Part shown: piece after piece, positions 39,412 to 59,826 of the stretch
Layout of the letters: each line of letters opens with the position of its first letter
How positions within the stretch are numbered: the first letter of the stretch is position 1
IMG/VR virus record: IMGVR_UViG_3300048008_000449
Span: 140,773-204,772 of that record
DNA: 64,000 bases
Reading direction: 5' to 3' (one strand)
Position numbers and translations under genes: made by a program
Notes under the pieces: model-generated
What the model was told of the DNA's origin: nothing
Databases searched by the model: none
What the model saw: the letters and a program-made list of their open reading frames with translations, nothing else

Positions 39412-40617
39412 TTATTTTGATTTATAGTGAATTAATTTGTCATAATATAGTGCTAAAGTAGCCCATATTGCGTCTGGGTACAAGTTAGTATATTTGTTTC
39501 CCATTTTATGATAATTTTCCCATACTGTTTTACTTACATCAAACTTACTGTAATATTTCCAAAAATCAGTATCTGTTCTATCACTTAACATGTAATGATG
39601 TTTTATATATGTACTATTATCATTCCAAACATTACGCATTGCTCTATTGTAAGTTTTAGCCCCATATCCACGTTTTAAGCACCGTACAAGCGTTGTTATA
39701 CTGAATTGCGTCATAAACAGTGCATTACTTTCTAAAGGGTCTATAAAGCCGTTACTGAGCCCTACTGCAACTACATTATTGTGCCAGGGATTAGCTAAGA
39801 CACTAGGATTCCATTTTAACAGTCTAGGTGTTTTTCCCATAAAGGGAGTTCTGTGTGCATTTACTTTATTAAACTCTGCAAGTGCATCTTCGTCAGTTTG
39901 ATGTTTGCTACTAAACACATATCCTGTTCCAATTCTATTTGTTAAATCAATTATAAATTGCCAACCATTACTACGTGCTACGCTTTGAGTGTATCCTTGT
40001 ACATCATTATCTTGCAATTCAAAAGGACAAACCCATGCTCTATCTACTAAATGATTTTCTAATTGTACTTCAGTATTGTCTTTTACAAATTTTCTACGAA
40101 ACCCTGTGCAGTCTATATATAAATCATATCCCTCTGGTAACTCGTCTAATGTGTCTATAATGTGAGTTACATTTTTACAATTATTTTTAACTATGTCTCC
40201 GGCTTTTTCAGCATCTAAGTGATATGCAGTTGCTTGCCAGCCACCTTTGTGATATAGTTGATCATTAATGTTATGCTTATCAACAATACCACTATCGTAT
40301 TGTTGTTTCCATTTATCAAAAACATTATTATCATTAAACCAAAAGGTGAATGCAAACGGATCGCCATTTGGCTTATTCCATTGACTCTTTATGTTTCCAA
40401 ATTTCTTTTGTGCATTACTTTTTTCCATCCATTCGTCTTCTGACATTCCCATGTCTTCAAAGAATTGTGCAATCTGTGGTAATGTACTTTCGCCTACGCC
40501 TATAATAGGAATATCACTACTTTCAATAAGTGTAATATCATAATCTGGAAATTGTTTTTCTAAGTATCCTGCGGCCCACCATCCAGTAGTTCCGCCTCCA
40601 ATAATACAAATTTTCAT
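39412..40617 (-). CDS. Flavin-dependent tryptophan-halogenase-like protein
   Basis: IIGGGTTGW, IGVGESTLP, IDCTGF, RIGTGYVFS, GLSNGFIDPLES. Confidence 0.85.
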   Translation of the reverse strand: MKICIIGGGTTGWWAAGYLEKQFPDYDITLIESSDIPIIGVGESTLPQIAQFFEDMGMSEDEWMEKSNAQKKFGNIKSQWNKPNGDPFAFTFWFNDNNVFDKWKQQYDSGIVDKHNINDQLYHKGGWQATAYHLDAEKAGDIVKNNCKNVTHIIDTLDELPEGYDLYIDCTGFRRKFVKDNTEVQLENHLVDRAWVCPFELQDNDVQGYTQSVARSNGWQFIIDLTNRIGTGYVFSSKHQTDEDALAEFNKVNAHRTPFMGKTPRLLKWNPSVLANPWHNNVVAVGLSNGFIDPLESNALFMTQFSITTLVRCLKRGYGAKTYNRAMRNVWNDNSTYIKHHYMLSDRTDTDFWKYYSKFDVSKTVWENYHKMGNKYTNLYPDAIWATLALYYDKLIHYKSK

Positions 40618-50562: not shown

Positions 50563-51924
50563 TTAAGGTGTTATTTGTAGTGTAGATGGTACTAATTGTA
50601 TCCAATTTGTTCCGTCATATCCTTCAAATATTTTAGTATCAGTATTAAAATAAAACTGTCCTTCTACCGGACTAACCGGTCTTTGTGCTTCTGTACCTTT
50701 AGGTGCTACAAACGTAGTAGGTGCATTAGCATAACTTTGTAAATTAGCTGTAACTGTAGTTATCTGCCCATCTGTATACGAATTTGCTGTATTTACGGCT
50801 GCTGTTTTAGTTATTAAATCTTGTTGTTGTGCAAATAAATTAGATACTGCTGTTGTTGAATAATTTGATAAATCATTTGGCTGTATTACATTATTAGCAT
50901 CAGTTAAATCACTTATATCTAATCCAGTTATTGTTGCATTAGTAACATCCATTGTATCATTAACTGTTAACTCATCTATTGATGCTACTGTTACTGCTAA
51001 CTGTGAATCGTTGTTGCCAGTTCCTACTGTAAGTACTGGGTTATTTGCTAGTGTATCGCCAAGGTCACCATATAGTGTTCCTGTTAAATAAGCATTGTGT
51101 CCAAAAAATGTATCTGCTCCAGTAGTATTAACTATTGTTGCTCCGCCTGATGATGATGGTGCTTTTAGTTTTTCAACTTCAGCATCGTGAATTGTTAATG
51201 TATCTCTTACTGCTCCAGTAGTAATGATTGGAACTAGTGAAGTTGGAGATGTTACATCACCATGCACATCACCATAAAGTCTACCTGTTACATTACCATT
51301 TAAACTACCAGTAAGAGAGACTGTATTACTTAGTGCTACACTAACACGAGCGTCTGCATAAGAATTAACTTCGGTTGCAAAATCTACAAAGGCAAATTTA
51401 CTTGTGCTACTGTCGTATAAAAGAAAATCTCCATTTGCTACAGTATCACTAGTATGTCCAACATCTGATAATCCAATTAGTGATTGTGAATTTTGTGATG
51501 CTGTAATGCGTGTGTTAATTTCACTTTCAAGGTTTACATAACTCCATGTTGAACCATCATATAAAATTAAATCACCAGTTGTAGCTGATCCATTATCAAT
51601 ATCAGTTAAATCAGATAATGTGGAAGGAATATTTCCTGCAATAATTATATCTGCAGTAAGTGTTCCTACTGATAAATTTCCTTTTTGTGTTATTTGTGCT
51701 GCTTCAATTTGGTTACTTGACTCTGCTCCAATGTATCCATCAATTACATAAAATGTCTGTGTTTCTGCGTCTCTAACAAATCCTGCATAATTGTTAATAC
51801 CAATTTTTCCTAAGAAGCCTATATCAGATATACCTGAATTATCCTTTCCTAAAATTAGGATAGGATCGGAAAAAGCAGCATCACTAGTGTCAATGTTTGA
51901 CGTTTGAATTTTTCTAAAAGACAT
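50563..51924 (-). CDS. Tail fibre-like structural protein
   Basis: LSDLTD and GDLILYD repeats, G-x-L-x-G repeats, C-terminal GTEAQRP..GQFYFNTD..FEGYDG. Confidence 0.7.
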   Translation of the reverse strand: MSFRKIQTSNIDTSDAAFSDPILILGKDNSGISDIGFLGKIGINNYAGFVRDAETQTFYVIDGYIGAESSNQIEAAQITQKGNLSVGTLTADIIIAGNIPSTLSDLTDIDNGSATTGDLILYDGSTWSYVNLESEINTRITASQNSQSLIGLSDVGHTSDTVANGDFLLYDSSTSKFAFVDFATEVNSYADARVSVALSNTVSLTGSLNGNVTGRLYGDVHGDVTSPTSLVPIITTGAVRDTLTIHDAEVEKLKAPSSSGGATIVNTTGADTFFGHNAYLTGTLYGDLGDTLANNPVLTVGTGNNDSQLAVTVASIDELTVNDTMDVTNATITGLDISDLTDANNVIQPNDLSNYSTTAVSNLFAQQQDLITKTAAVNTANSYTDGQITTVTANLQSYANAPTTFVAPKGTEAQRPVSPVEGQFYFNTDTKIFEGYDGTNWIQLVPSTLQITP

Positions 51925-51982
51925 TTTTGTGTTCCTTACGTATATAGTAGTATTTATCTATTACGTAATTATATTTAGCCAT

Positions 51983-52012
51983 AAAAAAAGCAGGGTAAAA
52001 ATACCCTGCTTT
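51983..52012 (-). terminator. Intrinsic terminator
   Basis: AAAGCAGGGTA/TACCCTGCTTT plus U tract. Confidence 0.85.
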
Positions 52013-52032: not shown

Positions 52033-53181
52033 TTACTTTTTAGCTTTAAGTTCTTCTACTTGAGCTGATAATTCTTTAACTGCTTCAATTAGTAGACCTG
52101 TGATGTTTCCGTATGCTACTGAATGAACACCTTCTGCATCTGTGTGTACTGCTTCTGGAAGAACTGCTTTTAGTTCTTGGGCGATAACACCAGTTGAAGT
52201 TGATCCATCTGAGATACGATCAAAAGTTACACCACGAATTGCTTCAACTTTACCTAAAGCACCGTCAATTACTTGTACGTTTGTTTTTAGAGTATCGTCT
52301 GAGTAAGCTGTAATATCACCAGTTGCTGTAAAGCTACCTGTGTATGAACCACTCATTGCAAACGATGTACCAGTTAATGATAAACCGTTGCCTGCAGTGT
52401 AAGTTGTATCTGCATCACCATTATCAGCATATACTTTTGCTGCTGCTAGTGCTGCGTCTGCTTTAGATGTTGCGTCTGCTGCCGCTGTTGCTACTGCGTC
52501 TGCTTCTGCTGTATCTGTGTAAGCATAAGAGATAGTAATTGCTTCAGCTTTTTTAGCATCAGCATATGTATTAGATGCTGAAATAGCTGCTGCTTCTGCC
52601 GCATCTGCTTTAGTAGTTGCGTCTGCTGCCGCTGTAGAAGCCGCTGATGAAGTAACACTAGCGATTGCTGAACTTAGTTCTGAATCTGTTGCCATTGCAT
52701 CTTGGATTTCTTTCAATGTATCAAACGCTGCGCCTGCACCGTTAGTTACTGTTGAAACTGCTGCCGCTTGTGCCGCATCAACATAAGTTTTGTTTGCCGC
52801 ATCGTTACCTGATGTTGGTGCTGCTAAATCAGTAATTTTCTTGCTGTTCATGTCGATGGTTTCTTTCATGTCCAGTGTATCGTCTATACGAACACCTTTT
52901 TTGAAACGTGTTGTGTTGTTTACGTTAGTACCAAAACTTGCGTTGTTACCATCGTCAGCTGCACCATCTGTAGTTGTTAGTTTTGTTGCTAGAATTGAAA
53001 TGTTACGTTCCATGTCCGCCATACGTCTTAGAGACGATTTTGAACCTGAAATTGTAATTTCTTCTGCACCTGGATCACCAGTAAACTCTGTTAGTGTACC
53101 AGTTGAATCGTACTTATATTTCTTTGATTTATCGAATGAAAAGGTACCTGTAGCACCATTACTTCTTACTTTTCTTGCCAT
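52033..53181 (-). CDS. Tail fibre with a C-terminal intramolecular chaperone (Peptidase S74)
   Basis: YSDDTLKTNV...RGVTF...GVIAQEL..VLPEAV...LIEAVKEL. Confidence 0.85.
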   Translation of the reverse strand: MARKVRSNGATGTFSFDKSKKYKYDSTGTLTEFTGDPGAEEITISGSKSSLRRMADMERNISILATKLTTTDGAADDGNNASFGTNVNNTTRFKKGVRIDDTLDMKETIDMNSKKITDLAAPTSGNDAANKTYVDAAQAAAVSTVTNGAGAAFDTLKEIQDAMATDSELSSAIASVTSSAASTAAADATTKADAAEAAAISASNTYADAKKAEAITISYAYTDTAEADAVATAAADATSKADAALAAAKVYADNGDADTTYTAGNGLSLTGTSFAMSGSYTGSFTATGDITAYSDDTLKTNVQVIDGALGKVEAIRGVTFDRISDGSTSTGVIAQELKAVLPEAVHTDAEGVHSVAYGNITGLLIEAVKELSAQVEELKAKK

Positions 53182-53203
53182 TTTAATTCTCCTTTAGAGT
53201 TGT

Positions 53204-53288
53204 TTAGCCACGTAGTAGAACTCTGTTCCACCATAGCACTTATTAAGTGCCTAAGTAGGGGGTTTGGCTCCCCCTACCTTTGGACTAA
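53204..53288 (-). ncRNA. Predicted four-way-junction structured RNA between two fibre genes
   Basis: Three hairpins closed by TTAGTCCA/TGGCTAA; see findings. Confidence 0.5.
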
Positions 53289-53294
53289 TCTTTA

Positions 53295-54737
53295 TTAGCT
53301 AACTAATTTCCATCCTTTGACTTCAATTTCGTCGCCTACTTCAATAACATTCGAGTTGAATGTTACTACACCTGTTGATGTGTTAACTGAACTTAATTCA
53401 GCTGGTCTAGCCAGTTGTCTGTTAACGTATACTGTGTAATCATCTGCTCCAACAACATCAGTAAATGTATATGCTAGTGTTGCCGCATTAGTTACATCAG
53501 TTACTGAACTGTGGAATGTTGAAGTTGAAATATTTGCTTCAATTCCTGCTACTGCTGTTGCAATTGCTGCATCACGTGCTGTTGCTTCTGATGCTACTTT
53601 AGAAGTTGCATCTGCACTTGCTGTAGCTTCAGCCGCTGATTGAGCTGCGTTTGCTTTAGCTGTTGCATCTGCTGCCGCTGATGCAATTGCATCTGCTTCT
53701 GCTGTATCTGCATAAGATTGTAATGATGTAGTTACTGTAGCAATCTCTGTATCAGTATATGTATTTGCTGACGTTCCACTTGACGAAGCACTTGATGCAA
53801 TCGCTGCTGTGTAAGCTGTAGTAATTGCTGTTTCACGTGTATCAGTGTAAGTGCCTGCTGCTGAAATTGCATCTGCTTCTGCTGCATCTGCTTTAGTAGT
53901 TGCATCTGTAGCCGCTGTAGTAAGTGCATTAGATACTGTGTTGTCAGTGTAATTACCTGCTGATGCAATTGCCGCTGTATCACCTGCTACTCTGTTTGAT
54001 GTTTCTGTTGATACTAGTGTGTTAAGAGCTGCTACGTCTGCTACTCTTGCCGCATTAGCTGAAACAATCGCTGCTTGGTTAGTAGAGATATCAGCTGCGT
54101 TAGTTGCAATGTTTGTATTAGCTGTAGTAAGTGCAGTTGTGTTAGTTGCAATATTAGCTGTTACTGTTGCACTAAAGTTAGCGTCATCGCCTAAGGCGTT
54201 AGCTAATTCATTTAATGTATCTAATGCACCAGGTGCACCGTTGATAACATTTGCAACTTGCTGGTCTACATATGCTTTGTTTGTTACGTCAGTTGTATCT
54301 ACTGGTGTTGAGACATTAACGATTCTGTTTGAATCCATGTCAATTTTATCACCAAATGTTACGGCTGCGCCGCCAGCGTCAGTAATTCTTTTACCAGACG
54401 CCATTTGTAATGTTGCGTTTATTGCTAGTGGTACCTGAGATGATAAAGTTAAAGCACCAGTACCTTCTGTCTTAATGGTAAGTCCTTGGTCAGTGTCAGA
54501 TCTAACAATAATAGTTCCAGAATCGTCTTCCAAAACTTTTTGGTTGTTAATGAATAGTGATCCTTGTGAAAGATATAAGTCTCTCCACTTGAATGAAGTA
54601 GAACCTAAATCGAAACCTGTTGTACCATCTGAATCAACATTAGGTAGGATTGAACCACCCATTGTTAAGTTTGCTAATAATTCAGAGGCGTCATCAGTTT
54701 TGAAACCACCATCAATTATAAATTTTCTTTGTGCCAT
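53295..54737 (-). CDS. Tail fibre-like coiled-coil protein
   Basis: DLGSTSFKWRDLYL, NKAYVD, APGALDTLNELA, Ala/Thr heptads. Confidence 0.75.
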   Translation of the reverse strand: MAQRKFIIDGGFKTDDASELLANLTMGGSILPNVDSDGTTGFDLGSTSFKWRDLYLSQGSLFINNQKVLEDDSGTIIVRSDTDQGLTIKTEGTGALTLSSQVPLAINATLQMASGKRITDAGGAAVTFGDKIDMDSNRIVNVSTPVDTTDVTNKAYVDQQVANVINGAPGALDTLNELANALGDDANFSATVTANIATNTTALTTANTNIATNAADISTNQAAIVSANAARVADVAALNTLVSTETSNRVAGDTAAIASAGNYTDNTVSNALTTAATDATTKADAAEADAISAAGTYTDTRETAITTAYTAAIASSASSSGTSANTYTDTEIATVTTSLQSYADTAEADAIASAAADATAKANAAQSAAEATASADATSKVASEATARDAAIATAVAGIEANISTSTFHSSVTDVTNAATLAYTFTDVVGADDYTVYVNRQLARPAELSSVNTSTGVVTFNSNVIEVGDEIEVKGWKLVS

Positions 54738-54841
54738 TTTATGACTCCTTTTTGATCAAAAAAGTTATTGCTACATTGAGTAGCAATGTATTTATTGCTT
54801 TTTTTTAACTATTAACTGCTTTTATAACAATTTTTAGTTAA

Positions 54842-54875
54842 AAGAGGCATACCCTGTTACCAAGCTATGCCTCTT
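54842..54875 (-). terminator. Intrinsic terminator
   Basis: AAGAGGCATA/TATGCCTCTT. Confidence 0.7.
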
Positions 54876-54905: not shown

Positions 54906-57900
54906 TTAAACATCAATGTAAGTTGCAATAACTTTCACGTCTGCTGAACCTGATGTTGGTGTATAAGTTAGTTCTACTGTGTTACCATTCATAGTCACAC
55001 TTGCATCACCAATTAAGTCGTTTCCGGTATAAACCATCGCGTACTCTGTAATGTATGCAGTTGTTCCATCATGTACAACTAAAGCTTCACGTGTCTCATA
55101 GTTACCATTTGCGTCACCCACTTGGATAACATACTTAGCTGAACGATACAGTGTACCGTTAAAGCTGTCTACAGTTGTAGCACCAGTTGCTGAAACTGAT
55201 GATTTCTGTACGTATGCTTTAATATCCGCTGAGAACTTATCAAACGTTACCTGACCTGCAACAAGTACTGGCTGTAAGCCTGAAATGTGTGCAACAACTA
55301 CTGCCGCAGTTCCTACTGGTAGGGCACTGTTGAATGTAATTGTTTGTGCAGATGAGTTGATAGTATAGTGAGTTACTGGATCCTGAATAACACCGCCAAC
55401 AAATACCATGCTGTTTGCTTGGTCTGTTACGAAGTTAAGTGAATAAGTAGTCGCTACACCGTCACCTGGGATAGTTTGACGTTGGTTACTTGTAAAGATA
55501 TCTAATGGGCTTACTAGCTCCATTCCATCTTCAGTTGAGTTAACACGTAATACAAAGTCTTCTTTACCTGTGTAATCTGTGTCTGAGACATCAGTTAAAT
55601 CAAGTACTGATTCATTTGTATCAATGCTAATAACACCTGTTGCACTATCGTAAGTTGCTAGGCCGTTGCCTGCTGTATCTGTTACAGATATAGCTGCTCT
55701 TGCTTTTGCTGGTGTGTAGTATTCGTTGCTACCTTCAGTTAAGTCATCTGTAGTGTAAACTGAGATGTCTTGTGACTGAATTGCTGCATCTAATACTGCT
55801 TTAGAAACTGCGTCACCTGGGTTGGCTGCTGTTCCTAAACCTGATACCATGTTACCGCCCATAGCTACATCACCGCTCATTGTTCCACCAGCTAGTGGTA
55901 GTTTAGTTGCGATTACTGTATCTTGTGCTGAGTCAGCTGCTGCAAACTCTGAACGAATTGCCGCTCTGTCTGTAGTTGCTGCTGCATGGTCTGTATCATT
56001 GTCTGATACTTCAGTTGCTAGTGCTTGTGATAGTGCCGCTTCAGCTGCCAATGCACGAGTTTCCTCTGCACCAATTGCTGTTGAGTTGGCTGCTACCGCA
56101 CCAGTTAACGTACTGTCTGCGTTTTGGAATGCTGTAACGATTTCTGTTAAAGAATCCAAAGCTGCTGGGTCAGTGTTACTGATGATGTCATTAACAGTCG
56201 ATGTTAAGTTTGTGATTGCTGTTGCATTTGCGCCTTCAGCTGCTGTTGCTCTAGTTACTTCAGCTGTTAAGTTAGTAGATACAGTAGAAATTGCTGCTGC
56301 ATTTACGCCCTCTGCCGCTGTTGCTCTAGTTACCTCATTTGAGATTGCTGTTGCGTTTGCTGCTTCTGCATTCGTTGCACGTGTTACTTCATTTGCTAAA
56401 TTAGCAGTTAATACACCTTCTGCTGCTGTTGCACGAGTTTCCTCTGCATTTACTGCTGCATCTAGTTTGTCATCTGCGTCTTTTAGAGTTGAAGCTGTAC
56501 TGATGTAATTAGCTGAACCATTAGCTGTGTAAGTACCGTCTGTTGCCAAACCTGCACCTGCTTGTGTAGCTGTAATTTCAGTTAAGTTATTTGCGATATC
56601 AGTTGCGTTTGCACCTTCTGCCGCTGTTGCTCTTGTTGTTTCCGCCGCAATTGCGTTTGCATTTACTAATTCAGCTGCTCTTGCTGTTGTTGCTTCTGCT
56701 GTAATTGCGTTTGCATTTACACCTTCAGCTGCTAAAGCTCTTACTGTTTCTGCTTGGATAGCAGATGCATTAGTTGCAATATCAGTTACGTTGGTTGCAA
56801 TGTTAGTTGCGTTAGTTGCGATATCAGTTACGTTACTTGCAATACCTGCCGCATTAGTTGCTACATTAGTTGTTAATGTTGCTTCTGCTGCTTCGGCACG
56901 TGTTTTTTCAGCTAAGATTGCCGCATCCAATTTGTTGTCAGCATCTTTTAAAGATGTTGCACTATCAATTGCATGTGAACCTGTTGCTGCTGTATACGTA
57001 CCATCTGCATTTAAGCCTGCGCCTAATTGCGATGCGTCAACTTCAGTTTGTAAGTTTGCAATACCTGATGATGAACCTGTGTTCAATTCATTAATTGCTT
57101 CTGTTACAGTTTGTGCTGTAGTTGTCATTGTTGCAGAACCCATTGTTGCTTCTAAAGCATCAATATTACCTTCTTCAGTTGTTAAACGTGTGTCTAACGC
57201 TGTATCAGCTGCTGCAAATTCAGTACGGATTGCCGCTCTGTCTGTTGCCGCTGTAGATGATAACGAAGTGATCGCACCGTTAATTGTGCTATCAGCACTT
57301 TGGAATGCACTAACAATTTCTGTTAATGAATCTAAAGCTGCTGGATCAGTGTTAGTTAGAATTGAATCAATTCTAGCTGTTTCAACATCAATGTTTGATT
57401 GTAAAACACCTTCTGCTGATTGTGCTCTAGCTATTTCAATGTTTAGGTTTGAAACGTTAGTTGCGATATCAACAACATTTGCTGCGATAGCATTTGTATG
57501 TGTTGTATCTGCTGTAGTTGAACGTGATACTTCATTAGCGATTGCTGTTGCATTTGCACCTTCAGCTGCTAAAGCACGAGTTTCCTCTGCTGTAATAGCA
57601 TTTGCATTTGCTAATTCAGCTGCTCTTGCTGTTGTTGCTTCTGCAGTAATTTTACCATCTAATGTTGTATCAGCTGCTGCTCTGTCTGTTGCTTCTGTAG
57701 AAATTGCAGTTGCGTTAGTAGCAATGTCTGCTGTATTAGTAGCAATATTGCCTGCATTAGCTGTAATGTTTAGAGTGTTAGCACCTTCTGCCGCTAAAGC
57801 TCTATTTTTCTCAACTAGTACTTCTGCATCTGTGTAAGTTTCTGCTGATGCAATTGCATCTAGTTCAGCTTGGTCTGCATATGCTTCTGCCGCTGCTGCT

Positions 57901-59672
57901 CTTACAACGTCTTTTGCTTCTGCCGCTGTAATTGCATCTGCTTCTGCTGCATCTGCTTTAGATGTTGCGTCTGCTGCCGCTGTTGCGATTGCATCTGCTT
58001 CTGCTGTATCTGCGTATGCTTGTGCTGCCGCTAGTGTTTGAGCATCACCTGTAGTTCTATTAGTTACTTCATTTGCTAACCCAGTTGTTAGAATGCCTTC
58101 AGCTGCTAAAGCACGAGTTTCCTCTGCCGCAATAGCTGTTGCATTAGTTGCGTCACCGTTTGTACGATCACTTGTTTCTGTTGCCAGATCAGTGATTACT
58201 GTGTTAAGTGTTGCAGTTAATACTGAGTCACCATTTTGAAATGCTGTAACGATTTCTGTTAATGAGTCTAAAGCTGCTGGATCAGTATTGCTAATAATGT
58301 TAGCAATGTCTGCTGTGTTGGTTGCAATATTAGTTGCGTTAGTTGCGATATCAGTTACATTAGTTGCAATGTCTGCTGTTGCAGTTGTTACTTCTGTATG
58401 TAGTTCGTTAATCGCTGCACCTAATGAAGTTGCAGTTGTATCAAGTGGTGTATTTGCGATATCACCAACAGTGTCTTCTAGTGCTTGTACTTCTGTTTCC
58501 AGTGTAGTTGCACGTGCTGCCAATGCAGTATCTGCCGCATCACTTGTTGCTGCTCTTGCAACGTCTTTTGCTTCTGCTGCCGCAATTGCGTCTAGCTCAG
58601 CTTGGTCTGCTTTAGCTGTTGCATCTGCTGCCGCTGTTGCGATTGCATCTGCTTCTGCTGTATCTGCGTATGTTTCCATTGCAGTTTGTAGGGCTGTATC
58701 TGCTGCTGCAAAATCAGTTCTGATACTTGTATCAGCTACTGCTCTAGCATTTGCTTCAGTGTTAATGTCTGCCGCGTTAGCTGCTTCAGCGCCTTGTGCT
58801 CTAGTTACTTCAGCTGCTAAGTCAGTTGTTAGCGTTGAAATTTCACCGTCTGTAGTGCTGATTTCAGTTGCTAAACCACTTTGTAGTGTGCTGATGTCGC
58901 CTTCGTTAACTGTAACTCTTGCGTCTAATGCATTGTCGTCAGCTAAACGTGTAGCTGCTTCAGTTGAAATAGCTGCCGCATTTGCCGCTTCAACACCTTG
59001 TGCTCTAGTTGCTTCAGTTGAAATTGCTGTTGCATTTACACCTTCTGCTGCTGTTGCACGTGTTACTTCTGCTGTGATAGCGTTAGCGTTAGCTGTAATA
59101 GCCGCTGTTAATGCACTATCTTGACTTTGGAATTCAGCAACGATCTCACTTAGTGAGTCAAGTGCTGCTGGATCAACGTTTGATACGATGTTATTAATTT
59201 GTGTTTGTAAACCAGCGTCTGCCGCTTTATAAGCTGTGTCAAGTGCAGATTCTGCGCCTGTTGCACGACTTACTTCGGTAGCTAGATCAGTAGTTAATAC
59301 ACCTTCTGCTGCTGTTGCACGAGTAATTTCAGCCGCAATATCATTTGCGTTCTGAGTTTCTGCTGCACGTGCTATAACTGCTTCTGCTGCCACTGCATCA
59401 GAAATATCTGTTGCAACTGCTGCCTGTGCTCTTGCATCTGTAAAATACTTAAACCCAGCATTTTCTGCTAAATCTGAAGTATCAAATGATCCAATTAAAT
59501 CACCAGCTGTTACTTTAGCTAATGATGATGAAGCGTTTGTGTGTACTAAAAGAGTGTCTAGACTGTCGAGAGATACAGAAGCAGTTTGGCCTGAAACTGA
59601 ACTTGCATCTAACTTAGTGTTAAGGACCGACTGATCCGCTAACGCTGGACTCTTAATTTGTCTAAAAGCCAT
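54906..59672 (-). CDS. Long repetitive coiled-coil tail fibre (about 1588 aa)
   Basis: AEVTRATAAEG and NTDPAALDSLTEIV repeats; likely start MAFRQIK at 59672 after GGAG. Confidence 0.8.
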   Translation of the reverse strand: MAFRQIKSPALADQSVLNTKLDASSVSGQTASVSLDSLDTLLVHTNASSSLAKVTAGDLIGSFDTSDLAENAGFKYFTDARAQAAVATDISDAVAAEAVIARAAETQNANDIAAEITRATAAEGVLTTDLATEVSRATGAESALDTAYKAADAGLQTQINNIVSNVDPAALDSLSEIVAEFQSQDSALTAAITANANAITAEVTRATAAEGVNATAISTEATRAQGVEAANAAAISTEAATRLADDNALDARVTVNEGDISTLQSGLATEISTTDGEISTLTTDLAAEVTRAQGAEAANAADINTEANARAVADTSIRTDFAAADTALQTAMETYADTAEADAIATAAADATAKADQAELDAIAAAEAKDVARAATSDAADTALAARATTLETEVQALEDTVGDIANTPLDTTATSLGAAINELHTEVTTATADIATNVTDIATNATNIATNTADIANIISNTDPAALDSLTEIVTAFQNGDSVLTATLNTVITDLATETSDRTNGDATNATAIAAEETRALAAEGILTTGLANEVTNRTTGDAQTLAAAQAYADTAEADAIATAAADATSKADAAEADAITAAEAKDVVRAAAAEAYADQAELDAIASAETYTDAEVLVEKNRALAAEGANTLNITANAGNIATNTADIATNATAISTEATDRAAADTTLDGKITAEATTARAAELANANAITAEETRALAAEGANATAIANEVSRSTTADTTHTNAIAANVVDIATNVSNLNIEIARAQSAEGVLQSNIDVETARIDSILTNTDPAALDSLTEIVSAFQSADSTINGAITSLSSTAATDRAAIRTEFAAADTALDTRLTTEEGNIDALEATMGSATMTTTAQTVTEAINELNTGSSSGIANLQTEVDASQLGAGLNADGTYTAATGSHAIDSATSLKDADNKLDAAILAEKTRAEAAEATLTTNVATNAAGIASNVTDIATNATNIATNVTDIATNASAIQAETVRALAAEGVNANAITAEATTARAAELVNANAIAAETTRATAAEGANATDIANNLTEITATQAGAGLATDGTYTANGSANYISTASTLKDADDKLDAAVNAEETRATAAEGVLTANLANEVTRATNAEAANATAISNEVTRATAAEGVNAAAISTVSTNLTAEVTRATAAEGANATAITNLTSTVNDIISNTDPAALDSLTEIVTAFQNADSTLTGAVAANSTAIGAEETRALAAEAALSQALATEVSDNDTDHAAATTDRAAIRSEFAAADSAQDTVIATKLPLAGGTMSGDVAMGGNMVSGLGTAANPGDAVSKAVLDAAIQSQDISVYTTDDLTEGSNEYYTPAKARAAISVTDTAGNGLATYDSATGVISIDTNESVLDLTDVSDTDYTGKEDFVLRVNSTEDGMELVSPLDIFTSNQRQTIPGDGVATTYSLNFVTDQANSMVFVGGVIQDPVTHYTINSSAQTITFNSALPVGTAAVVVAHISGLQPVLVAGQVTFDKFSADIKAYVQKSSVSATGATTVDSFNGTLYRSAKYVIQVGDANGNYETREALVVHDGTTAYITEYAMVYTGNDLIGDASVTMNGNTVELTYTPTSGSADVKVIATYIDV
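57970..58672. repeat. 49-bp exact direct repeat (57970-58018 and 58624-58672) within the long fibre gene
   Basis: tctgctgccgctgttgcgattgcatctgcttctgctgtatctgcgtatg occurs twice; related copies in the 382-aa and 480-aa genes. Confidence 0.85.
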
Positions 59673-59826
59673 AGAGATTTCTCCAATCAAATATATTTGA
59701 TTTGCATGTAATCTTTACATGCAAAAGTATAACCACAGCTTAACGAGGTTATACTACATAAGGTCATTACAACCTATGCAATGTATTTATTAGATTTGGG
59801 AGTTTATTAAGTAATATGATTATTAT

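Follow-up and report, generated by a model that had tools for sequence, protein, structure and literature searches.

A conserved RNA junction between two phage fibre genes with a loop predicted to mask the downstream start codon

We identified a structured RNA that lies between two fibre genes of an uncultured marine myovirus, and that belongs to a family of at least 60 distinct sequences in marine viral and metagenome contigs. [quoted passage not shown] A further small covarying hairpin holds part of the Shine–Dalgarno (SD) sequence. Our best reading is a structure that masks the translation-initiation region inside a bicistronic late fibre operon, and that probably couples translation of the second fibre to that of the first. 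The masking is supported by covariation, whereas the coupling is inferred; we give this reading as a whole a probability of about 0.5.

The sequence analysed (the window) is a stretch of 64,000 nt that forms the last 64 kb of a 204,772-nt IMG/VR viral contig (IMGVR_UViG_3300048008_000449), which is estimated to be 56% complete. The phage is a myovirus with a tail-sheath-like protein that is only about 38% identical to those of jumbo phages such as PA5oct and Phosso. Enriched upstream motifs give an early-type promoter (AGGTTGACAAA ... TATAGT) and a T4-like late box, NATAAATAC, which is the most enriched upstream 8/9-mer in the genome. All features of the locus are on the minus strand and are listed here in the direction of transcription.

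54788–54796 (minus): late promoter box AATAAATAC of the bicistronic fibre operon, 51 nt upstream of the fibre-1 ATG and after a terminator-like hairpin.
53295–54737 (minus): fibre gene 1 (480 amino acids), with the C-terminal end ..GDEIEVKGWKLVS; tandem stops TAA TAA lie at 53297–53292.
53289–53294 (minus): 6-nt spacer between the first stop codon and P1.
53281–53288 (minus): 5′ strand of the closing helix P1 (UUAGUCCA).
53255–53279 (minus): P2, GC-rich hairpin 1 (AGGUAGGGGG / CCCCCUACUU), with apical loop AGCCAAA at 53263–53269.
53265–53268 (minus): loop nucleotides GCCA, the 5′ strand of the predicted pseudoknot, which would pair with UGGC of the downstream start region.
53235–53251 (minus): P3, hairpin 2 (GGCACUU AAU AAGUGCU).
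53213–53233 (minus): P4, hairpin 3 (UGGUGGAAC AGA GUUCUACUA), with the conserved loop motif ACAGAGU.
53204–53212 (minus): J4/1 (CG here, nearly invariant UCG in the family) and the 3′ strand of P1 (UGGCUAA).
53189–53199 (minus): P5, small hairpin CUCU-AAA-GGAG that holds the 3′ half of the SD (AAGGAG, 53189–53194).
53177–53181 (minus): start codon AUG (53181–53179) and the first nucleotides of codon 2; UGGC (53180–53177) is the 3′ strand of the predicted pseudoknot.
52033–53181 (minus): fibre gene 2 (382 amino acids), with a conserved N-domain and a C-terminal Peptidase_S74 chaperone domain.
51987–52012 (minus): intrinsic terminator ending the bicistronic unit; the next late box, GATAAATAC, follows at 51958.

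The initial annotation had described a cloverleaf-like four-way junction on the minus strand at 53204–53288, and this observation is confirmed: all four named helices are present. RNAfold returns exactly this junction, with P2 read as GUAGGGGG-AGCCAAA-CCCCCUAC extended by G–U and A–U pairs, at −36.6 kcal/mol. Dinucleotide shuffles average −22.8 ± 3.4 kcal/mol (z = −4.08) and 0 of 200 fold as well. The plus strand gives −26.7 kcal/mol (z = −1.92), so G–U pairs favour the minus strand, as had been claimed. The three hairpins persist when 191 nt are folded, but in that fold the closing helix is replaced by an alternative pairing of the same 3′ nucleotides with upstream coding sequence; P1 is therefore established by covariation, not by energy. 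The element is GC-rich for this genome (0.47 against 0.342 for the 204.8-kb contig). P1 ends at 53204 and the SD starts at 53194, leaving 9 nt between them rather than the roughly 11 nt first estimated; the description was otherwise correct in every checkable detail.

The element matches no family or signal against which it was compared. ARAGORN finds no tRNA gene in the window and no Rfam tRNA or tmRNA model gives a hit at E ≤ 10; the loops are 7, 3 and 3 nt long and a 2-nt linker separates P4 from P1. The best hit in Rfam 15 has E = 0.36, at 23 bits against a gathering threshold of 197 bits, and all others have E > 1. No terminator-like or sigma-70-like site occurs in the intergenic 53182–53294, there is no U tract and there is no late box. 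The element is a single copy in the genome, and a repeated or mobile element was rejected on this ground. The flanking genes are fibre-like: the upstream open reading frame (ORF) hits tail-fibre PHROGs (E = 7.5e-10), and the downstream ORF hits long-tail-fibre PHROGs (E = 1e-30) and Peptidase_S74 (E = 3.3e-13).

Homologues were found independently of structure. Searches of IMG/VR with the two flanking proteins returned 139 locus records (loci are denoted L below), and blastn and nhmmer searches with the 113-nt spacer found homologues at 70–90% identity. A plain MAFFT alignment, which is blind to structure, already showed compensatory changes in P1, P2 and P4. We then built a covariance model from 8 sequences (R1) and a second from 49 sequences (R2), which together detect about 60 distinct members. 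R1 missed some divergent members (L117/L219, L181 and L213/214), and R2 recovered some of them. In a covariance-model alignment of 65 distinct rows, 90.7% of cells are standard pairs against 66.9 ± 0.7% after shuffling, 29 of 30 pairs have changes on both sides, the covariation score is 0.611 against 0.218, and sliding the 3′ partners by 1–3 columns drops pairing to 42–53%. Because this alignment was fitted to the model, these counts lean towards it, and the MAFFT result is the independent check. All 5 P1 pairs and all 9 P2 pairs show compensatory changes, with 96.7% and 97.4% of cells paired, respectively. The two helices of the alignment that cover P3 are 83–86% paired, with compensatory changes in all 7 pairs, although P3 is variable in length and absent in some members (for example, L206). 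The two that cover P4 show compensatory changes in 8 of 9 pairs. In the consensus of 60 distinct sequences, the unpaired C-AA (J1/2), UUAG (J2/3) and UCG (J4/1) are conserved, as is the P4 loop. Absence of covariation in homologues, or behaviour as a plain terminator, had been set beforehand as grounds for rejection; covariation is abundant and the element is not a plain terminator.

The genomic context is fixed. The upstream ORF is large and ends with ..DDE[I/L]EVTG[FLW].. in 58 of 59 family loci, and its stop codon lies 4–7 nt before P1 in 51 of 59 distinct members, whereas the length of the element varies from 67 to 104 nt. The downstream ORF starts 17–31 nt after P1 and has the conserved N-domain ..DKSKKYKY..SGSKSSLRR.AD.ERN..ILA... 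As an unbiased test, we retrieved 80 metagenome loci by this N-domain alone, of which 71 carry the junction. R1 gave a hit on the same strand just upstream in 65; two more were found by R2 (L181 and L219), two are copies cut by the contig end (L204 and L220) and two have a divergent four-way junction seen by RNAfold (L213/214). Of the remainder, three keep only a P2-like hairpin (L217/218/229), one has no element and abutting genes, AGGAGA-TAA-AAC-ATG (L165), and five have their own terminator plus late promoter and no element (L189/192/195/196/201). The element therefore goes with the gene pair, not with the downstream gene alone. No relative of the N-domain exists in 185,579 prokaryote genomes, so there is no prophage or host clue, and tblastn gave no match to it in about 50,000 isolate phage records. 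A search of a phage isolate database gave no near match, and only short fibre-gene fragments in a more distant search.

The apical loop of P2 is complementary to the AUG plus codon 2 in the same register in about 50 of 60 members. Genes that begin AUG-GCA have loops with (U)GCCA(U), or GUCA with a G–U pair; AUG-GGA genes have (U)UCCCA; and AUG-UCA and AUG-UCU genes have (U)GACA(U), extending up to UUUUGACA/UGUCAAGA. When we anchored on pairing to the U and G of the AUG, the dinucleotide 5′ of the loop CA was GC (10), GU (3) or AC (7) where codon 2 starts with GC; CC (10, with 3 lacking a pseudoknot) where it starts with GG; and GA (25, with 2 others) where it starts with UC, with no cross-combinations. 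The mean anchored run is 4.72 nt against 3.55 ± 0.15 in 5,000 loop shuffles, none of which reaches it, and the mean duplex energy is −5.4 against −2.4 ± 0.3 kcal/mol when shuffled. This register-anchored count was used because, in a MAFFT alignment that included the start region, the loop columns were not in register. The switches are independent events, as they occur inside identical P2 stems (GGUAGGGGG and AGUAGGGAG) and between close relatives that share an unusual P4 (L199 and L202, and L210 and L227). In the window, GCCA (53268–53265) faces UGGC (53180–53177) at −6.5 kcal/mol, and the reduced P2-only form (L217) still has UGACAU facing AUGUCA. There are exceptions: the two copies in one phage (L185 and L194) keep the junction but lack complementarity, so the junction must have some role beyond the mask; the L164 group has only CCA/UGG; and L224/225 have a GUAA loop and no pseudoknot, but there the SD UAAGGAG overlaps the P1 3′ strand.

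Between P1 and the AUG, the arms of P5 pair a 5′ strand with the 3′ part of the SD and the nucleotides after it. These arms covary across the family (ACUC/GAGU, AUCU/AGAU, GCUC/GAGC, ACUUUU/AGGAGAGU and CCCC/GGAGG), although the hairpin is weak, at −1.4 to −5.3 kcal/mol.

No terminator or promoter signal was found between the late box at 54796 and the terminator at 52012–51987. Marine metatranscriptomes from several studies hold the stretch, and contigs identical to the window run through the element without a break in two studies and bridge both genes (X1, 52722–53860; X2, 53153–53673). All four runs lack coverage in the 51900–52001 bin, at the terminator/promoter gap, and two have none at 54756–54857. 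This fits a bicistronic RNA but does not prove it, as assembled contigs show neither ends, strand nor level, and DNA carry-over cannot be excluded.

The initial annotation had inferred a cis-regulatory or processing RNA that sets fibre stoichiometry, or a small RNA, and this interpretation is partly supported. The cis-regulatory reading is supported and can be made more specific, because the element would act on the translation-initiation region of the downstream fibre, which fits a role in stoichiometry; the processing and small-RNA alternatives are neither supported nor excluded. The loop–AUG pseudoknot, the SD hairpin and the fixed distance to the upstream stop codon had not been seen. In our model, P1–P4 form a scaffold, the P2 loop holds the start region in a long-range pseudoknot and P5 pairs the 3′ half of the SD, so that in the folded state the whole initiation region of fibre 2 would be masked. 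The covariation shows that selection maintains pairing between the P2 loop and the AUG region, and between the P5 arms around the SD. Pairing of the start codon cannot coexist with initiator-tRNA binding, so the folded state should repress initiation, a step inferred from established initiation biology. We propose that the mask is opened by ribosomes finishing fibre 1, which would have to unzip the outer P1 pairs; without P1, the 4–6-bp loop–AUG contact would lose its pre-organization and a ribosome would be placed next to the SD. P1 would also bring the stop codon and the SD close together in space, which would favour reinitiation. Both routes are forms of translational coupling (reviewed in PMC12548453), the first being of the RNA-unfolding type. 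Fibre 2 would then be made only when, and about as often as, fibre 1 is made. The analysis itself establishes the structure, its conservation and context, the loop–AUG and P5 complementarity with their covariation, the operon signals and the presence of bridging contigs in RNA libraries; that the pairings form in vivo and repress initiation, that upstream termination relieves them and that fibre-2 translation depends on fibre-1 translation are inferences.

The coupling step rests on the narrow stop-to-P1 distance, the loss of the element when the gene has its own promoter, its replacement in L165 by classical overlap-type coupling (an SD within the upstream gene and a 4-nt gap), the SD-in-P1 variant of L224/225 and the pseudoknot of only 3 bp in a subfamily with a 33-nt gap. 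Several points weigh against this reading. The pseudoknot is short (3–8 bp) and P5 is weak, and a ribosome at the stop codon would reach only the outer part of P1, as the masking loop lies about 20–30 nt further on, so relief of the mask needs an indirect step. L172 has a 14-nt gap yet an 8-bp pseudoknot, and the model does not explain the conserved junction nucleotides or the P4 loop. These features, and the junctions that lack a pseudoknot, keep a factor-binding role and a processing or stability role alive as rivals or additional functions.

A static attenuator, in which the same mask lowers initiation at fibre 2 to a fixed fraction of fibre 1 and so sets an unequal ratio, without dependence on upstream translation, is possible but less likely. 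It rests on the same masking evidence, the weak and short pairings suit partial rather than full repression, and the short stop-to-P1 gap could merely reflect a compact genome (92% coding by a crude gene call). However, the narrowness of that gap while element length varies, the absence of the element where the gene has its own promoter, the SD-in-P1 variant and the weakest pseudoknot in the 33-nt-gap subfamily argue against it. More doubtful is an operator or aptamer, bound by a trans factor that stabilizes or opens the mask, either a phage protein such as a fibre or its chaperone (autogenous control) or a small ligand, with P5 and the pseudoknot as expression platform; any such binding would be inferred by analogy alone. 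The conserved unpaired nucleotides and the junction kept without a pseudoknot in L185/L194 fit this view, P2 and P4 are of similar length while P3 is variable or dispensable (L206), which recalls aptamers with two docked arms, and in L131b/L194 a strong terminator-like hairpin follows the junction before the SD, as in switches with alternative platforms. However, no Rfam riboswitch or protein-binding leader matches, about 10 conserved unpaired positions are few for a ligand pocket, no candidate factor is identified and no mutually exclusive pairing that covaries was found. Two such pairings were examined by eye: the P4 loop (AGAGU) with the P5 5′ arm, as an anti-anti-SD, fits the window and L158 but does not covary in L109, L230, L110 or L227; and competition of UGGC in the P1 3′ strand with the start region for the P2 loop holds in the window only.

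An RNA processing or stability element, cleaved by RNase E at the AU-rich flanks or by RNase P/Z as on plant-mitochondrial t-elements, or acting as an exonuclease barrier, so that the two cistrons are separated or differentially stabilized, or the source of a stable small RNA, is unlikely as the sole role but could coexist with the mask. The intercistronic position, AU-rich single-stranded flanks beside a very stable fold, cloverleaf topology and lack of a terminator are compatible with it; it does not explain the loop–AUG covariation, P5 or the fixed stop distance, tRNA-like D/T loops are absent, and RNA-library contigs run through the element, although contigs cannot show ends. A chance fold, plain terminator or DNA-level signal, such as the DGR target hairpin downstream of a fibre gene, is very improbable. 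A GC-rich hairpin just after the stop of a fibre gene resembles terminators and the DGR cruciform (PMC3240598), and the reduced form in L217 is a hairpin followed by a U-rich run, but the fold energy, strand asymmetry and covariation in all helices contradict this, and the homologues are 60 distinct sequences rather than assembly duplicates of one. A DGR hairpin was rejected because no reverse transcriptase (RVT_1) match occurs in the 204.8-kb contig, although at 56% completeness this absence is not absolute. A speculative and improbable alternative is that P2, with its G-rich 5′ arm, C-rich 3′ arm and loop CA(U) paired to the AUG, is a cis-acting mimic of the initiator-tRNA anticodon arm. The junction would then be an IRES-like, or a factor- or ligand-sensing, device that delivers or withholds a pre-formed codon–anticodon helix to the 30S P site, a phage counterpart of the dicistrovirus IGR IRES pseudoknot controlling tail-fibre synthesis.

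mRNA structures that mask an initiation region, probably for coupling, are already known; the present architecture matches no curated family and occurs in no isolate. In translational coupling by RNA unfolding (Escherichia coli rpmI–rplT, MS2/fr coat–lysis and coat–replicase, and f1 genes VII–IX), the downstream initiation region is base-paired, translation of the upstream cistron is thought to open it, and coupling can span tens of nucleotides (+52 nt in rpmI–rplT; PMC12548453). Here the stop–start distance is about 100–140 nt and is bridged by an autonomous four-way junction, the partner of the AUG is a hairpin loop in the intercistronic RNA rather than upstream coding sequence, and the ribosome would act on the closing helix rather than on the masking strand; the coupling remains a hypothesis. 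In the leader-dependent pseudoknot of IncI-alpha/IncB plasmid repY–repZ (ColIb-P9), a hairpin loop also pairs with sequence at the downstream ribosome-binding site in connection with termination of an upstream ORF, but that pseudoknot lies upstream of the SD and activates translation, whereas this one covers the AUG and should repress; no sequence or structural homology is known. Pseudoknot operators and riboswitches that trap the SD or AUG (rpsO–S15, T4 gene 32, SAM-II and preQ1-II) likewise include the initiation region in a compact fold through a loop–strand pseudoknot. Here no Rfam model matches, no ligand or protein is known, and a four-way junction is followed by a separate SD hairpin between two fibre genes. 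tRNA and tRNA-like processing signals (t-elements and mascRNA) share the cloverleaf of a 6–7-bp closing helix and three hairpins, but here D/T-loop consensus is absent, arms are 8–10 bp with 3–7-nt loops, and linkers occur on all four junction strands, including 2–4 nt between P4 and P1. The dicistrovirus IGR IRES pseudoknot I, an anticodon-arm mimic, is also an intergenic structure in a dicistronic message with a hairpin loop paired to the codon region at the start of the downstream ORF; here, a canonical SD and AUG at normal spacing are present, the pairing covers the AUG plus 2–3 further nt, the loop geometry is not that of an anticodon loop and there is no evidence for factor-independent initiation.

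This family would add to the known RNAs a well-supported structured class that is absent from Rfam 15, with four covarying helices and a covarying pseudoknot with a start codon, which is rarely so clearly readable from sequence alone. It comes from uncultured marine jumbo-type myoviruses that have no isolate relatives carrying this module. It offers a concrete example of how phages may enforce matched synthesis of two interacting fibre segments across a long intercistronic gap, and a natural case in which the unfolding and reinitiation models of coupling can be separated through the position of the stop codon relative to a closing helix. For annotation, the covariance model marks a conserved fibre–fibre joint that is flanked by highly variable receptor-binding regions.

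Two further readings of the intergenic sequence were rejected. Ribosomal bypass or read-through that fuses the two fibres was rejected because the last sense codon has no matching landing codon, the length of the element (and so the frame relation) varies, stops occur in P1 and a normal SD–AUG is present. A TAATAT / CATAAT sequence just upstream of P1 resembles a −10 promoter element, but it overlaps the upstream stop codon, the late box of this genome is a different motif, no sigma-70-like site is called, and the operon has a proper late box upstream of fibre 1.

In the whole genome, of which the window is C1:140773-204772, two sets of motifs are enriched upstream of genes: AGGTTGACAAA with (A)GTATAGTTAA, which is of an early, sigma-70-like type, and [G/A/C]ATAAATAC, which corresponds to a T4-type late box. 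Both late boxes upstream of the large structural genes (window 54767-54796 and 59760-59791, minus strand) read AATAAATACATTGC. At 54787-54767 the box is followed at once by a hairpin plus U-run, a terminator-like arrangement that lies inside the 5′ leader of fibre gene 1 and could be a leader attenuator or a stabiliser. Directly upstream of the fibre operon, an ORF of 1594 amino acids (window 54906-59690, minus strand) has no Pfam or PHROG match at the thresholds used. A further ORF (window 39412-40617, minus strand) has a strong match to a PHROG annotated as tryptophan halogenase (E 4.5e-83); it is a gene of the auxiliary-metabolism type, as predicted from this match, and lies next to the structural module.

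The upstream stop codon in the window (53292-53297, minus strand) and in the family loci is usually followed by further stops in other frames (TAATATAA, TAATTTAA, TAATCTAA), and the closing helix P1 itself reads YUAG...CUAR. Stop codons in all frames therefore precede or enter the structure.

Some loci depart from the typical arrangement of the module. In L131:81-234 and L194:1359-1512, the junction is followed by a 13-bp hairpin plus U-run (−17 kcal/mol) before the Shine–Dalgarno sequence of the fibre gene, and the loop of hairpin P2 reads UUGUCAUAA, which has the same sense as the start region and is not complementary to it. The second copy in the same phage (L185/L131:4370) also lacks the pseudoknot. 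Other loci are natural ‘deletion’ variants of the module (L165:1310-1520 and L217:1310-1520). In L165 the two fibre genes abut, with the Shine–Dalgarno sequence inside the upstream gene, whereas L217, L218 and L229 keep only the P2 hairpin, with loop UGACAU, followed by a U-rich run.

Metatranscriptome contigs that cover window 52360-53920 show many ‘joints’ between the two fibre genes and within them. These most likely come from related phages, or from the Ala/Thr-rich repeats that are shared by fibre genes, and they fit frequent mosaicism around the conserved joint.
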